Below, one piece after another: positions 5,767 through 24,936 of a stretch of DNA of 64,000 nt (its first letter is position 1; each line of letters starts with the position of its first letter). Below the pieces are notes generated by a model. The model ran no database searches. It saw nothing but the letters and a program-made list of their open reading frames with translations, and had not been told where the DNA came from. Both the position numbers and the translations under genes were made by a program. Source of the DNA: Parasitella parasitica NRRL 2501 (Eukaryota; Fungi; Mucoromycota); the NCBI GenBank assembly GCA_025201805.1, contig MU619343.1, positions 49,889 to 113,888 on the forward strand, given 5' to 3'.

Positions 5767-6752
5767 ATGTTTTCCCCTGTGCTCAAGAGAAGTGTAAGTT
5801 TAGAGAGAAACAGCCCGTGACAGAGATTTTAACCATGCAAATAGCTTACAGCCGCTGCTGCCGGTAGCGCTTGGGTCGCAACTGCCTCTACGGCATTTGC
5901 GGAAGAAAAGAGAACCAAGGTAAGAAAATATAGAAAAAAAAAAAAAAAAAAAAAGCGAGCACCAACAAGATGTGATCAGCCTTCTCATCAGTTAATGTAC
6001 AGCTCAGTATTTACGATGAACCCGAGCCCAAAGTAGTCATCATTGAATCGCCAACCAAGCTTGAAGAGCAAGTTTACATTGCACAAAAATATGCCAACGA
6101 AACATTGGAAGAGGGCAAGGTAAATTTGAAATACGATATAACAGGCGGCAAAACCTTCATATTCTGATGTATAAATGTATGATAGACTCAAGTCAATGTC
6201 TGGGTACAAAAATACCAAGAACTAGAGAATCAAGTTACCACTAACATCAGCAGCACTATCGACAAAGATGAAGAGATCTTTCCCAATGTAGTTTATGTTG
6301 GTGTTGCCGCATTGGCCGGCACCATTATCGCTCGCAACAGAAACATTGTGCTTCGTTTTTTGACTTCTACCGCATTAGCCGTTGGAGCTTCGTACTATCT
6401 TCTTCCAAAGACCACTCACAATGTTGCCGTTCAGCTCGAGAAGTTAGAACATAGATATCCTCCACTCCACGCAGCACATCAGAGCGTCAACGATGCTGTT
6501 GGAGATGTCCGCAAACAAATTGATGACACTGTATCGCAATTGCGTGGCACCGTCGATGAAAATGCCAGCAAATTGCGTCAACAGATCGAGCAGAACACGA
6601 AACTCGTCAAAGATCAAGTTACCAGTGCTGTCGACTCTACCAACTCCGAGGCAAAGGAAAAGTACGATCAAGTCAAGAAGAACGTTGAAAGCATGTACAC
6701 AACAAGATCAAAGCCCGGCGTTGATGAAGTCTTGAAGCAAGAAAGAAAGTAA
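5767..6752 (+). CDS. MICOS subunit MIC26/MIC27 (apolipoprotein O family), 4 exons
   Basis: Spliced MFSPVLKRS|LTAAAAGSAWVATASTAFAEEKRTK|LSIYDEPEP...PTKLEEQV...|...YVGVAALAGTIIARNRN; the LSIYD and AGxIxARNR motifs are typical of the family. Confidence 0.8.
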
Positions 6753-6912
6753 AATTTTTCAATAAATTGTATATAAAAGTCTATTTATTAAAATCATAAT
6801 GACATGGATTGCCCTTGTTTTTTTTGACTTTTTTGACTTGGCCTGCTGTTGTTTGATGGTAGTGTATATAGCTATTTTTTGGATATATAACCCCTCCCTT
6901 TGTTCAATCTTT

Positions 6913-6922
6913 NNNNNNNNNN
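6913..6922. other. Assembly gap (10 N)
   Basis: Run of n. Confidence 1.
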
Positions 6923-7050
6923 CAACATCAAAACAACAAATAGCAAATCAATAGTTGGCAGCCAACTTCGGCAGCAGCACAAGGTTCACTCACACATTTC
7001 CTCTTTTCCTTTTTCTTTCTTGTCCTAGTTTTACAGAACAAAGATTCAAC

Positions 7051-8616
7051 ATGTCAAAAGATAATGTACAAGAACCTCATCCTTTTTATGACGAAAAGTC
7101 TATCGAAAAAGAAGCCCGGATTCGGAACCTTTTTGATTCGCTAGACCACAAGGGTCAAGGTGTTGTGTATACCAAAGATATATCAGAAGCATGCCGACTG
7201 CCAGCCCATACGAGATATGCGTCAGAACTGCTGAATTCAGACGATGAAAATGGGATAGACTATGATAGATTTAGGGCTCACGTCATTGAAAAAGAGCAAG
7301 AGCTTTGGGATGTGTTCAGCGCCATCAACCAACAGGGCGACCATAGATTGAAGCCGAATGAATTGGAATATGCGCTAAAGGAGTCCGGGATTCATGTTAC
7401 AAAATCCGATATCGAAGCCTTGGTTCAATTTATTGGCACTGATGGCCATGGCTACATTGATTTTGAAAATTGGAGAAATTTCTTGCTGCTTTTGCCTCAC
7501 GAAACTACGTTGACCGAAATCTACAGATATTATCAGACCACGACACAGCTCAATGCCGATGCTGAGGTTGTTATTCCACACACGGACGAGGCAGCGCGGA
7601 ATGCATACAAATACCTAACAGCAGGCGCTATGGCAGGCTGTGTTTCACGCACCTGCACTGCTCCCCTAGATCGACTCAAAGTATACCTTATTACTCACAC
7701 TACTTATCAACCCCACCTTAATACACATCAACACAAAGCATCGTCATCGGCCATCTTGAATGCTGTAAAGAAAATCTATCGGGATGGCGGTTTTCGTGGT
7801 CTTTACGTCGGTAATGGTCTAAACGTCATAAAAATCGTGCCAGAATCAGCCATCAAATTTTACGTTTTTGAAACGTCAAAGGCAATCATGGCCCAAATGA
7901 CAGGTGCACAAGATAAAAACTCGATTCCTGTTGGTGCGCGTTTCATTGCTGGCGGTGTGGCCGGCTTGTGCTCTCAATTTTGTATATATCCTTTAGAAAC
8001 TCTCAAGACGAGAATCATGTCCAGCCAAGAAGGACAGGGCGTCAGACCAAGTGCCTTAAAGACAATAAGAGAAATGTATAAAACTGGTGGCCCAAGAGCT
8101 TTCTGGCCTGGTTTATTTTTGAGTCTGTTGGGTGTATTTCCATACCAAGCACTAGATATGGGTATTTATGAAACTTTGAAAGTGTCTTATTTGCAGTCCA
8201 TGGATAAAGCTGGTGCTAATCAGGGATTGCCACAAGGCGAAAAGGTGCATCCTAACGTGCTAGTGCTGTGGATGTGTGGCATGGTTAGTGGCTCAATTGG
8301 AGCAAGTAGTGTTTATCCTTTAAACATGATTAGGACTAGGTAAGACTTGAATGATCATGTGTGTGTGGATTGTATGCGTGTGTGTATGTGCGTGCTAACA
8401 AGCATCTGTATATAAACTAGATTACAAGCGCAGGGAACACCCGGCCATCCTTTTAGATACACTTCTGCTTGGGATGTAGCTCGAAAAACGTATAGAGCTG
8501 ATGGTGTCCGAGGATTCTATAAAGGACTCGGTCCAACTTTATTCAAAGTTGTGCCTTCCATTAGTATCAGTTATGCCGTCTATGAATTTTCAAAGAGATC
8601 ATTGGGAATTTCATAA
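7051..8616 (+). CDS. SAL1: Calcium-binding mitochondrial carrier (ATP-Mg/Pi carrier, SCaMC type); one intron at about 8340-8420
   Basis: N-terminal EF-hand-like loops (DHKGQG, DGHGYIDFENW); three carrier signatures PLDRLKV, PLETLKT, PLNMIRTR; last exon LQAQGTPGHP...YEFSKRSLGIS*. Confidence 0.9.
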
Positions 8617-18930: not shown

Positions 18931-20025
18931 ATGGACGAATATACTTTAAAAGATGTTTCCAAGCACCAAAATTCTGATTCCTGCTGGGTTGTTTACAAAA
19001 GCAAGGTATATGATGTAACAGAATTTATTCAAGACCATCCAGGTGGAGACGACCTCATTTTAGACCATGCAGGACATGATGTTACTGCAGTCATGAAGGA
19101 TGTGCTTGAACATGAGCATTCTGACTCGGCCTATGAAATCTTGGAGGAATATTGTATTGGCATTATTGTGGAAAATACTGCTACCACTGCGAATGTTGCT
19201 GCTACCAAATTGTCACTTCACGAACAACGTATGAAGCTATTGGAGGAGGAGGAAGAAAGCAAAACATTTGGCAAGGAGGATTTCAGACCCTCCGAAACCG
19301 ATATCACCTCTGACGTTAAAAAGAATCAATTCTTGGATCTGAGCAAGGCACTAGTTCCTCAACTCATCCGTGCTCGGTATACAAAGGAATTCTATCTGGA
19401 GCAAGTTCACAAGCCTCGTTACATGAATGGGCCAGCCATCTTCTTTGGGCACCCGTTATTAGAACCTTTGACAAAGACGGCTTGGTATGTTATCCCCACT
19501 GTTTGGATTCCGTACGTAGGCTACCAATTATACCAATCATTTGCGTACGGCAACGACATAGCAACATGGATGTCTTTTGTTTTGGGAATAGCCATTTGGA
19601 GTTTATTAGAATACCTCCTTCACCGCTTCTTTTTTCATTTGGATGAGCTATTACCTGACCATCAAGCAGCATTTGTATTGCATTTTGTCATTCATGGATT
19701 CCATCATTATTTGCCTATGGATAAATTAAGATTAGTCATGCCTCCTACGCTTGCCATTATCATTGCCTATCCCTTGGTGTCTTTGGGCCATTTCTTGTTT
19801 CCTCCAATGGTCTCCCATGGTGTTGTTGCTGGCGGTTTCTTTGGCTATGTCCTGTACGACTGCACGCATTATTATCTTCATCATGCTCGCGTATTCAAAT
19901 ATCATTTCAGAGAAATGAAGAAATATCACATGGCGCATCATTACAAGAATTATGAAGGTGGCTACGGTATTACTTCCAAGATTTGGGATTATTGCTTTGG
20001 TACCGTACTGGAGTATACCAACTAA
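18931..20025 (+). CDS. SCS7: Sphingolipid fatty acid 2-hydroxylase (cytochrome b5 fusion), intronless
   Basis: b5 HPGG motif; His boxes LHRFFFH, HGFHH, HYYLHH, HMAHH; PMDKLRLVMPP. Confidence 0.97.
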   Translation: MDEYTLKDVSKHQNSDSCWVVYKSKVYDVTEFIQDHPGGDDLILDHAGHDVTAVMKDVLEHEHSDSAYEILEEYCIGIIVENTATTANVAATKLSLHEQRMKLLEEEEESKTFGKEDFRPSETDITSDVKKNQFLDLSKALVPQLIRARYTKEFYLEQVHKPRYMNGPAIFFGHPLLEPLTKTAWYVIPTVWIPYVGYQLYQSFAYGNDIATWMSFVLGIAIWSLLEYLLHRFFFHLDELLPDHQAAFVLHFVIHGFHHYLPMDKLRLVMPPTLAIIIAYPLVSLGHFLFPPMVSHGVVAGGFFGYVLYDCTHYYLHHARVFKYHFREMKKYHMAHHYKNYEGGYGITSKIWDYCFGTVLEYTN

Positions 20026-20905
20026 TCTTTTTTAAAATTCATTGCTATTAATCATTATTACTTTATTACACATCTGTTTTGCTTATTTTTATGTATTATG
20101 TAAAAAAATCTTTCGACTTTTTGGAAAGCATGCTTTATTCCGTAATCTCATTAATAAAATCCATGCACACGCACATTAAATGTATTTAAATGTAGAAGAT
20201 TATCTCTAACGAGTAAAGAAAGTGTTCTTGTGAAAAGATTTTTAGTGGCATATCAGAAAATTTTTCTTCTGTAATTTGTAGTTTAACTTCCAATAGTGAA
20301 GATTTCATTTAAGGATGTGTTTATTCTCAATGGTAGATTTTATCAGAGATTGAGCGCATTACTTAGTTTTTGATAAACCAATGTTAAGGCTCTTGTGCAA
20401 GAATAATCCGATAGTAAGGATAGTATTGATCATAAAGAGAAAAATGTTATAGTAATATGGATTCCATTTGATTTAGACTATTCATTAGTTTTCCCTTCTA
20501 TAATTGCGACTTGTTTTTTTTCATAATTAACTCCTTGAATTTAGGATCTTGTTGTTATATGGTTTCAGATGCTGGATGAGCTTGAGAGTATGTTGATATC
20601 CGATGTGTAACGCTTTCATGATTGTGGATGCCAACATCTCGGCTTTGCTATAGATTTTCCGCTCGATCTTATTCTCAAGGGACTTTTGGTCTTGGATTTC
20701 ATTGAATAATTGATAAATTATGGTGCTTCCTTAACGTACATCGTTTATCCTAACATATATGACACTGGACTACACGATCGTAAATTATCATATCTTGAAA
20801 AGCAAAAAAACCTTCACATGACAAGATGAGAACCTGGAGTCAAGTATTGACTTGAAGAAAAAGGCTTTTAAAGAACAAGGTTTCCGTTTTATTAAACAGA
20901 ATATT

Positions 20906-21216
20906 CCTCAGTTAGAAAAACGCCTTCCGCCGATAATGACTCTAGGATTGCAATGACGAGCCATAAGTCAGGAAACAATGATGGCAAGAGAAATATCGAA
21001 ACAATTATCTGGGAAAATGAAATTAATCAGGTAATGATCCGTTTATTACATTCAAAATAGAGAGTTGATATATTTTCTACGAACCGAGGAAAGCGATGCG
21101 AGGATAAAGATTTTAGTGATGAGATCCGGGAAATAGGGTAGATTATACTCATCCCAAATGTCATGTCATATTACTTTATGATCTGATATTTTATTTTGAC
21201 ATCCGGTTTTAGAATT
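20906..21216. repeat. Insertion of about 310 bp within the Fanzor remnant; dispersed repeat copy A
   Basis: Flanked by ATT...ATT; removing it restores the frame IKQNI-DTSTS; homologous to about 62497-62680. Confidence 0.65.
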
Positions 21217-22245
21217 GATACATCAACCAGTACTACGGGCCGTACTACGAAGCAAAAAGAAATACTTCACGAAAATCAACCAAGCCTGCTATAATCAGTA
21301 ATGCAGAAACGCTTCTTTCAGAAACAAATTTATCTACTGTAGACGTTGACAAATTTTCGGGTTATATAAAGGCAAGAGCTTCTGTGGAGGATTTGTTGAG
21401 CCAATGCTATGGAAATGAAACTCAAAAACATGAAGAGAAATACTTGCCTGGCTCCTGTTTTAATTTAATGTGGAGAAGAATAGAAATCTGTGGTTAGAGA
21501 AATAATTCATATTAAAAATTCGAGGTTACTTTCCTCAAAATAATCTAAGTCTCAACTGTATGCGGCCTATGTACTACTAAGGCTACAACAAAAACATATT
21601 ACGAAACTATTGCACAAGTAACTCAACTTGTGGAAGAGTTATTCACAAGTGAAGAAGTTACGTTAAAACAACGATTAAGTAAACCATTCCGAAAAATGAA
21701 ATTCTCAAGCAAAGTTACTACTACCAAACTGATGAAATATTAACACGAAGCTTGAAGAAGAAATTTGGTCTTGATTGCGTCCTGGTGTTAAGGAACTGGT
21801 CTGTCTCCAAACAATAAATACCATGAAGCGACAAGAAATAAGGGCCTTATACGAATGTACAAGAGGAATGGGGTTTTCGTTTTTCTGATTGATAAGTTTA
21901 AAACCTCGTCATAATGCCCAATCTGTGAAGATGATCTCGAAACTTTCAAAACAGTTTAGTTAATCCCCGCTTATATAAAAGGGCTGGTATACCAGTAGTC
22001 AAATGCCACGGGCTACTAAGGTATATGATAACGGTAATTGTAACAACGAATTGGGATGATTACAACCACTCAATCATTAGGTACAAGAGCAGCAAAATGC
22101 CTTTCTGAAGAAACGGTAAAAAAAGTTATGGAACCGAGATCCTGCAGCTGCTTGGACTTTCGAAAGATATTGATAAGTTTAAGGGTCAAGTGCCCAAAGC
22201 TGTTTTTCAGAAAACAAGCCCAAAAATCAACATAAAAAAGAGAAA

Positions 22246-22286
22246 TTTTCCACTAGAGTATTGATCTGGCTATTTAATGCAGGTAA
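22246..22286 (+). ncRNA. Candidate Fanzor omegaRNA scaffold at the element's right end
   Basis: TTTTCCACTAGAGTATTGATCTGGCTATTTAATGCAGGTAA lies directly downstream of the RuvC-III-coding region and contains a CTAGA/TCTGG hairpin. Confidence 0.6.
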
Positions 22287-23186
22287 TATACCGTATTAAT
22301 ATCCTGTATTAGTGAAAATATTATAAGACAAGAAATTAGAATTGCAACAAGTGCACATCATTATGCAGTCCAAACAAGGACTTCGTTGGGCTTAGACGTC
22401 TACTGCTGGCATGGCAAAATGATGCACTTTTGACTGATCTACTAAAATACATGAATAACTTCAGTAATCAAGATAATTTTACACAGTCTATACCCCCCCT
22501 TTTTTATATATTACTATAAACATGCGAAAAAGACCCCTTTTTTTGTTGCATATATAGTTCTTTATTTTGGTCTTGCCGACATCAATATCAACCCATGAAT
22601 ATGGCGAGCATGCAACAAACATGTATAGAACGCACACCCAGGATTGTGTATATGTCTCAACTAAATGTTCGGATGGATCAAGTGCAGTGTAGAGCAATAA
22701 AAAGCTCTCCTCGCTTTCTCCTTTTAACCTACTTTTTTCTTTTGCTTATATTGATATTCTTTCATACTACAAAAAGGATAAAAGAAGCCCCTAAGTAGAA
22801 CGAAAGACATGAAAAAACTACACTGGCTCTTTGCTGCTTCCAAAAAAAAAAGAAAAAAAAAAAAGAGGATCCTCTCCTTGTAAAAAAAGACCCCTTCTAT
22901 TCTCAATTTCATAATGATCACCTCTCCTTGTGTTGTCGTTGTTGTTTTCTTGTTGCTATTGGTGTTGTCTTGTTAAGAGAAAAAGTTGCAACTACAATAC
23001 ATCAACTTCTTTTCCCTTTTTCACTTCTTTTTTTTTTTTTATCCCCCTCGTTGTCTATGTTCAACTTGTCATAATAATTTTATTACTTCTGCCATTACTA
23101 CTATTACCACTACTAGAACATCTGTAAATACACATATATTTTATCAATCCATCTAACTGACCAAAAGACAGATAAGAAAGAGGAAA

Positions 23187-24936
23187 ATGGGTGATATACA
23201 AAGAACATTCGTCGCTATATTTATTGCACTTGCATTTGTTACATGTCAACAACAGCCAATACCAACATCAACGTCAAATATATCGACTACTACTTCCTCT
23301 TCAAAGAACCCTACCACTACGACAACAGGTACTTATATTTGGCAATCACAAATCGATCGAACTATTTGTACATGTATTAAGGAGATGTATTAAAAAAAAC
23401 ATTTAGACTCTTCGTCGTCTTCCACCACTTGCGGTTCAAATGGCAACACAGATACAATTTGCTCTCCAAGAACTGGAGATGTTTGGAGAAATGGTACTTG
23501 GTATCCGATTACATGGAATACAAAGTATGTATTATGATTCTGCAACGAAATAAGGCATGTATGCTAATTATCAATTCAGGTACCCATCTTATGTGTCTTA
23601 TGTTAGTATATATTTACGCAAACTACATGTACGCGCATACTAATTACATCTTATGTAATAGCCAACATTGGATGTCTACATCTACTTTGTACAGAACTAT
23701 CAAAATATCCTCATAAAAAATATCACCAATATAAGTACTTCGAAAGGAAACGTAGCTGTCCTTGTCGATGATACATGGAGACTTGATTCATCGGCACAGA
23801 CATACAAAAGCTTAATTTACATTGTACCAAATGGTATTAATCCAGAAGAAGAGATAACAAATAGATTTTCAGATTATCCTCCACCTATAAATAATCTAGT
23901 AGAACGTAATGGATTATATTGCGCCCTATACTGCATTTATGCTAACATGTCCACCCTGTTTAGAAATGGCTTTGGTCCCCTTGTCTACCGCTCTATCTGA
24001 ATCTGCAAATGCTACTTTATCATCAGCAATTGCTTCAATGACAAATAATCTTATACCTACCTTGCCACCATCAGAATCTTCAGTCGTGAAATTGTCCGCA
24101 GATGATGAGGTTCATAGAAAACAGGCCGGTCCAGAAGCTCGCACTATTCAACCCTGGGTTATTGCAGCTGTTGTGCTAGCATGCTTAGCTGTACTAGGTG
24201 CATGTCTTGCCATCCTCTGGGTCATGAGACATAGTAGAAGAAGGAAATTAGTATACGGGGAAAAGGGACATCTGGGTATGTAATTTTTAATGTTAAGGGT
24301 ACACTTTGAGTATTAACAAATGAGCATATCATAGAACTCAATAGCACAGCAAGTAGCTCCATGTTTCCTGTATTAGAGCAAGATGGCAGTAGCAAAGAAA
24401 AATTTAATGCCATGTCTACCATCTCTCTAAATCAACCTACAATCAACACGGCAGTGTCAACGCCCGTGCGATTTTATGGAACAGCACATACCGGCAGTGA
24501 GAGAGGTTCGCTGAAAGGTCATACAGCGCCAAGCAGTCCGTTAAATAATACTGCATCTTCGAATATGGGGGGCTTCATATCTACGCCTTCTTTGCCACTA
24601 GACGGAAAAATATACATGCTTGGAGACGATGCACGTCCTCAATCTACCACTTCGTTTAGTAACATCTCCAGTAGGTCGGAGCCTCCTCTGACATCCACCG
24701 ATGCCCTCTTGATCGCAGACACTTTTCGTCAGCGAATGAGAAGGCCAGAATGGCAGCAACAACAACAGAAAAGCAACGATGCAAATGATGCAGATGAGGA
24801 GGAAGAAAAGAGACGTTACATAAGTGAGCAATTATTGAAAAAAGAATTGGAAGCAGAAGGTACCTTGATGAAAAAAGTCGGAAAGCGGGCGCATTTACTG
24901 GCAGCCACTTACCAAAAGCAGGACCAGGAGCCTTGA
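23187..24936 (+). CDS. Type I single-pass membrane protein (signal peptide, Ser/Thr stalk, TM, cytoplasmic tail), multi-exon
   Basis: MGDIQRTFVAIFIALAFVTCQ; CSPRTGDVWRNGTWYPITWNTK; TM WVIAAVVLACLAVLGACLAILWVM followed by RHSRRRK; GT-AG introns phase-consistent where checked. Confidence 0.8.

Follow-up and report, generated by a model that had tools for sequence, protein, structure and literature searches.

A worn Fanzor1 omegaRNA scaffold at the end of a dead, probably Tc1/mariner-type element in Parasitella parasitica, and candidate spliced omegaRNAs in its relatives

A 41-mer at positions 22246-22286 of a 64-kb stretch of the Parasitella parasitica NRRL 2501 genome (contig MU619343.1; hereafter the window) resembles the omegaRNA scaffold of the Fanzor1 nuclease PpFz1. 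The locus raises three questions: whether this is a genuine scaffold, where the element that carries it ends and the guide begins, and whether the copy still has a function.

A PpFz1-type scaffold beside a Fanzor1 relic

A preliminary description of the locus had compared it with the PpFz1 scaffold, and the sequence given there for PpFz1 proves correct (Table S3 of PMC11423790). The 41-mer, TAATGCAGG (22275-22283) and CCTGTATTA (22303-22311) also lie exactly where they had been placed. The 41-mer is identical to the first 42 nt of the PpFz1 omegaRNA in 32 of 42 aligned columns, with a local alignment score of 20 at this position and at most 13 elsewhere in the window. A covariance model built from 10 relatives, with the window excluded, recovers 22242-22285 at 37.8 bits (E 2.7e-6) as the sole significant match in a search of the same 64 kb. 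Both results identify 22246-22286 as a PpFz1-type Fanzor1 scaffold, as had been proposed; an Rfam search gave no match for it. Across the genome, 11 sites matched the model, and all 10 that were inspected, the window's included, lie within Fanzor elements or Fanzor remnants. One of the genome-wide matches, at 475041-475089 of contig C1 of the assembly (G000), scores 43 bits.

The structure of the scaffold is shared as well. When 11 sequences drawn from several genera of Mucorales are aligned, 85.7% of the stem-1 cells are paired and 5 of the 7 pairs vary on both sides; none of 500 shuffles was as good and all slid controls were worse, in tests that kinship among the 11 sequences inflates. One aligned sequence (L070) and another relative (L073) are human-skin metagenome contigs that encode Mucorales-type Fanzor and were treated as fungal. 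The window copy keeps five of the seven pairs, one of them via changes on both sides, and has two broken. Its CTAGA/TCTGG stem (22253-57/22265-69), described earlier as a hairpin, is present in the minimum-energy structure of 22246-22311, and folding energy alone is without significance for this interval (z -1.6) and for the 41-mer (z +0.6). A possible pseudoknot pairing the scaffold 5' end with GGTAA was rejected because relatives do not retain it; Fanzor1 RNAs have been reported without a pseudoknot (PMC13565253, PMC10711439). The closest scaffold, 83% alike, is that of a Mucor mucedo element (L067). Judged from its sequence, the window scaffold is real, although worn.

The scaffold lies just 3' of a Fanzor1 relic on the same strand (Table 1), which bears out the suggested link to a Fanzor ORF. 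Two ORF pieces match PpFz1 (PDB 9CF0; E 1.3e-9 and 1.6e-8), and Pfam returned nothing meaningful from the ORF pieces. A frameshift-aware alignment (X at stops) with protein P0141 gives 49% identity over 423 aligned residues. The relic carries three stops and at least six frameshifts, and its RuvC-II Glu is replaced by Lys; CxxC and WNRD are retained. Its N-terminal ~355 codons were undetectable by blastp, tblastn or blastn against Fanzor loci. An intact ORF with RuvC D-E-D, by which an active Fanzor1 nuclease is recognized, is thus absent from the window copy.

The preliminary description had also suggested looking for an empty site in related strains, and the orthologous locus of P. parasitica CBS 412.66 (L062) is one: it is without the ~2.1-kb insertion. 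The corresponding interval of Mucor plumbeus is likewise short. A left inverted repeat of the window element was sought and none was found, and the similarity of its left end to the left ends of relatives is not significant. In a genome DNA search with 22100-22400 the locus itself was the sole match, so there is no close sister copy. Two Tc1-type DDE_3 transposase genes lie near SCS7 in CBS 412.66 (L062:2175-2990 and 6605-7612) and are a possible transposase source for such elements.

Table 1. Features of the insertion and its surroundings (window coordinates)
Position	Strand	Feature	Basis
18931..20025	+	SCS7/FA2H ceramide fatty-acid hydroxylase, host gene; left neighbour and synteny anchor	94% identity with protein P0001 of P. 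parasitica CBS 412.66; orthologous locus L062
20175..20193	.	Left junction, approximate; no recognisable left inverted repeat	Homology to empty site L062 ends
20194..20723	.	Insertion interior, no feature assigned	Single copy in genome; no Fanzor match
20724..22240	+	Decayed Fanzor1 (PpFz1/DUF8286-type), C-terminal ~450 codons, intron near 22022-22080	Protein matches, frameshift-aware alignment
22246..22282	+	omegaRNA scaffold, 5' part: stem-loop 1 at 22252-22270 (5/7 pairs intact) and TGCAG arm at 22278-22282	PpFz1 alignment, covariance model
22283..22303	+	Putative 21-nt intron/subterminal remnant, starting with splice-donor-like GTAATA	Aligns to first 26 nt of L067 intron
22304..22308	+	Predicted 3' arm of stem 2, pairing with TGCAG: right-end CTG at 22304-06 and TA target-site duplication at 22307-08	Same end in relatives; ties as best empty-site junction
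22309..22328	+	Host flank, predicted guide, starting TTAGTGAAAA	Aligns with L062 empty site after TATA
23187..24936	+	Psg1-like host gene; right neighbour and synteny anchor; end approximate	L062 and L064 gene tables, alignment

The right end of the element

The transposon right end had been put at 22286, with a sharp drop in conservation among copies expected after GGTAA. The relatives argue against both: homology in the sister family continues past GGTAA for ~100-150 nt, up to a terminal inverted repeat that ends CTG^TA (^ marks a boundary). This family, B, is younger and resides in the same genome, with ~10 copies or fragments that are 82-98% alike; its ~3-kb element ends TA^CAGT...ACTG^TA and has the scaffold ~100-150 nt inside the right end. 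The same layout is found in elements of CBS 412.66 (L063), Gilbertella (L068), M. mucedo, M. saturninus (L077) and Cokeromyces (L078) and in metagenome contigs. Terminal inverted repeats with TA were identified in the sister family and in the CBS 412.66, M. mucedo and Gilbertella elements, and GGTAA as an element end is absent from all relatives examined. In ten related families, which share their ends by descent and are not independent trials, the scaffold ends TRCAG^GT; a stretch resembling an intron comes next (70-165 nt in nine families, 36 in one), then AG and, 5-9 nt later, a Tc1/mariner-type CTG and TA duplication. Such ends (CAG-starting terminal inverted repeats plus TA duplication) are seen in the relatives; in the window only the right one is recognisable. 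Of 10 insertions, 9 have a left flank whose last bases are ATA. A target-site duplication within Fanzor1 scaffolds has been predicted previously (PMC10711439, PMC13565253). The genome holds a second Fanzor1 family (C16, C22) with 85-bp inverted repeats (L047:2777-2861 and 6051-6135) and a 529-codon open frame, whose right end likewise carries TGCAG^GT and AAAAG^GTAAGC.

Our best reading of the window, by comparison with these relatives, is that the element ends at 22306, that 22307-08 is the target-site duplication and that the guide would start at 22309; CCTGTATTA is then most likely the element end plus TA plus flank. The empty site TATA^TTGGTAC lines up with TA^TTAGTGA at 22307-22315, and the flank from 22309 agrees with it in 22 of 34 columns (p 0.07). 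A scan for the empty-site junction gives its top score, 194, to 22305-22308, tied with 22292, and 191 to 22287. The profile is flat across 22280-22319, and the empty site therefore brackets, but does not prove, the element end.

In the window, TGCAG and CTGTA lie only 21 nt apart, against 36-165 nt in the relatives. This spacer (22283-22303) can be aligned with the beginning of the M. mucedo intron as far as the first CTG inside that intron (p 0.011, in one of nine comparisons). As the same element also has the closest scaffold, the spacer is probably the product of a deletion from an internal to the terminal CTG. The earlier reading of TATACC... as the guide is not supported: that stretch does not match the empty site (p 0.50) and resembles the M. 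mucedo intron start. A different account of the spacer needs no deletion: the window copy would come from a subfamily that is short and intron-less by nature, with stem 2 a long hairpin. The 21 nt do lengthen the hairpin (22274-22308, z -2.3; folding energy alone is again not significant), and a Logan contig (L076) has 36 nt between its arms and an inverted repeat of ~30 bp. We nevertheless consider this account improbable: the spacer aligns with the start of a long-intron relative, the window has no matching left inverted repeat, and the genome holds no second copy. The Logan contig itself combines an intron-less Fanzor ORF with ~30-bp terminal inverted repeats, and the 36 nt between its TGCAG and TTGTA (L076:2845-2886) can be read as a very short intron or as a short form that is not spliced.

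The fold-back of CCTGTATTA onto TAATGCAGG exists where it had been described and is present in the minimum-energy fold of 22246-22311. Its suggested role in sequestering the scaffold is not supported, as the TGCAG/CTGTA core is conserved in the relatives that retain their end; it is best read as the scaffold's own stem 2 plus the target-site duplication. The donor GTAATA persists in the window copy (22283-22463 region); if it were joined to an acceptor in the flank, this hypothetical splice would remove the end and the guide.

Candidate introns and the guide of the relatives

The DNA between the two arms of stem 2 in the relatives has the marks of introns. Of 22 loci, 17 have GT directly after TRCAG and three have GC, with variable bases beyond, and the AG 5-9 nt ahead of the terminal CTGTA arm in the ten families compares with a background of 0.024 per nt. 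The sequence preceding the donor, TGCAG (TACAG in L066), is complementary to terminal CTGTA. An internal AG^GT, with a branch-like CTRAY before each acceptor, occurs in family B, L063, L066 and L070, and the Gilbertella element has the same internal AG^GT; the remaining relatives have one long intron. Several family-B copies (L044, L050, L053, L056-L060) carry differing short deletions in the 50 nt directly downstream of the scaffold, with donor and branch/acceptor mostly retained, and three copies of the family have a GC donor.

The RNA evidence comes from one run, X1, mapped on a single family-B copy (L053), and its RNA nature is inferred from removed host introns. In one contig the joint 6125->6250, with the SNPs of another copy (L045), corresponds to that copy with its 60-nt GT..AG intron precisely excised. 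A contig with the L053-specific flank breaks off precisely on the C of the final acceptor CAG, which could reflect a fork in the assembly graph, if spliced and unspliced forms coexist, or a chance end. Unspliced and half-spliced family-B transcripts are present in X1, and a fully (doubly) spliced junction is not among the joints listed for the run. High-depth contigs with several joints also cover the 5' part of the family-B Fanzor (L053:3300-3750). None of the family-B copies fetched has an intact ORF; these dead copies thus appear to be transcribed and are probably spliced. Spliced Fanzor guides, or a guide RNA precursor that needs the spliceosome, are not described in the literature searched.

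Taking these observations together, we think it likely that the window holds the 3' end of a dead Tc1/mariner-type element with a PpFz1-type Fanzor1, that the omegaRNA of its relatives is spliced, and that the window copy has lost its intron region by deletion. The dead, non-autonomous element lies between SCS7 and the Psg1-like gene, inserted at what is best read as a TA. Its omegaRNA scaffold would consist of stem 1, TGCAG and the closing CTG-TA of element end and duplication, with the host flank from 22309 as guide. In better-preserved Mucorales elements the 70-165 nt of subterminal DNA between the arms would be one spliceosomal intron or two back to back, and splicing would join scaffold, element end and flank. 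Once the element has excised, Fanzor could then cut the empty ATA^flank site, with repair restoring the element; the filled site, GTA^flank, would be without the ATN motif. The ATA left flanks match the ATN motif of PpFz1, provided that the first guide base follows the 3' TA. In the window copy, a deletion would have taken most of the subterminal DNA, leaving the arms 21 nt apart. First-intron removal is seen in the RNA of one copy, and the remaining steps of this model are inferred.

The published PpFz1 target consists of the TAM ATA followed by AACATCC, so that the guide begins 2 nt after GGTAA (PMC11423790). By our comparison it begins inside a predicted intron with donor GTAAGC; introns are not mentioned in that study (PMC11423790). 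The guide and the downstream extension of the published target recur in the CBS 412.66 element (L063:7991-8153; LN733591), and beyond them come AG^GT, another intron-like stretch and ACTG^TA. The published 'native guide' is therefore element-internal, and the guide of the published structure is probably intron sequence. With slightly less confidence than in the joint reading above, we favour the view that Mucorales Fanzor1 uses a spliced omegaRNA, made by removing one intron or two abutting ones that contain the subterminal repeats, that the published PpFz1 structure represents the unspliced form with intron as guide, and that the window copy is close to a natural genomic equivalent of the spliced product.

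Conversely, the native omegaRNA could be unspliced, with a fixed internal guide after GGTAAGC (in the window, the equivalent from 22289 onward) and splicing serving only to process the Fanzor mRNA 3' UTR. Yeast yielded a 71-nt PpFz1 RNA that carries the internal guide and supports DNA cleavage, the unspliced RNA made there being active in vitro (PMC11423790), and unspliced and half-spliced transcripts occur in X1. Yet such a guide is part of the element, as its conservation in a second copy (L063) shows, and could not direct cutting of empty sites; no similarity in it is shared between families, and many family-B copies have lost it by deletion. It would also leave unexplained why the TAM matches the insertion flank and why TGCAG pairs with CTGTA, and yeast may not splice these introns. 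Yeast has a strict TACTAAC branch site. On balance we regard a fixed internal guide as unlikely.

Should splicing indeed build the omegaRNA, the empty-site (homing) logic would be restored for PpFz1, and a different native stem 2 would be predicted for engineering. More speculatively, there would be reason to revisit the cyclophilin partner of the FRI domain, which is specific to this clade.

The window copy today and known systems compared

The good preservation of the scaffold relative to the ORF had suggested its use in trans. However, better preservation of the scaffold is common to all relatives (between families, scaffolds are 76% alike and ORF DNA aligns at ~60%) and is therefore inherited by the window copy. 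The scaffold has three private changes in 41 nt, and about three are expected under drift, given host flanks that differ by 13.6% between the two strains. Apart from its own locus, the genome assembly contains no perfect match to the predicted guide; there are two 2-mismatch sites elsewhere in the genome, against one for the control. The scaffold's decay thus matches neutral drift, and use in trans finds no support. An element without left end and subterminal repeats should also not excise, and the window copy is decaying and most likely functionless.

These results bear on the preliminary description as a whole, in which the element ends at 22286, TATACC... is the guide, the scaffold is selected for use in trans and the fold-back switches it off. 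In its favour, 22287 scores nearly as high as the best junction, and ghost omegaRNAs without a Fanzor gene do work with SpuFz1 (PMC10432273). A ghost omegaRNA, however, would be expected to be multi-copy, expressed, conserved after loss of the ORF and accompanied by an intact Fanzor elsewhere, and the window scaffold is single copy with drift-level decay. Two stem-1 pairs are broken, and its model score of 37.8 bits falls far short of the 63-64 reached by held-out relatives similar in length. Together with the ends of the relatives, this makes that combination of claims very improbable.

The window copy is a fossil whose value is comparative, as it helps to locate the true scaffold end of the PpFz1 clade. 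It suggests that the spliceosome may settle a clash between the long ends needed by the transposase and the compact scaffold of the nuclease. The nearest known system is PpFz1-omegaRNA (PDB 9CF0-9CF3; PMC11423790), which has the same protein clade and the same short scaffold (32/42, 7-bp stem 1) as the window and an ATN TAM that fits the ATA insertion flanks; unlike PpFz1, the window copy is dead. SpuFz1 (Spu-1; PMC10432273) belongs to a non-autonomous inverted-repeat element whose omegaRNA continues beyond the right end and takes its guide from the flank, as predicted for the window copy, although there the scaffold is contiguous with the element end, and its ghost loci are numerous and conserved whereas the window copy is single and decayed. 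For the Fanzor1 reRNA of SfAV no splicing was reported (PMC10711439). Finally, in IStrons (10.1101/2023.11.20.567912), TnpB elements that are group I introns, splicing and guide RNA likewise share the right end; there, the self-splicing intron clears the element from host mRNA and reportedly conflicts with the guide. In the Fanzor relatives described here, unlike in IStrons, the introns are spliceosomal and their removal appears to assemble the guide RNA.
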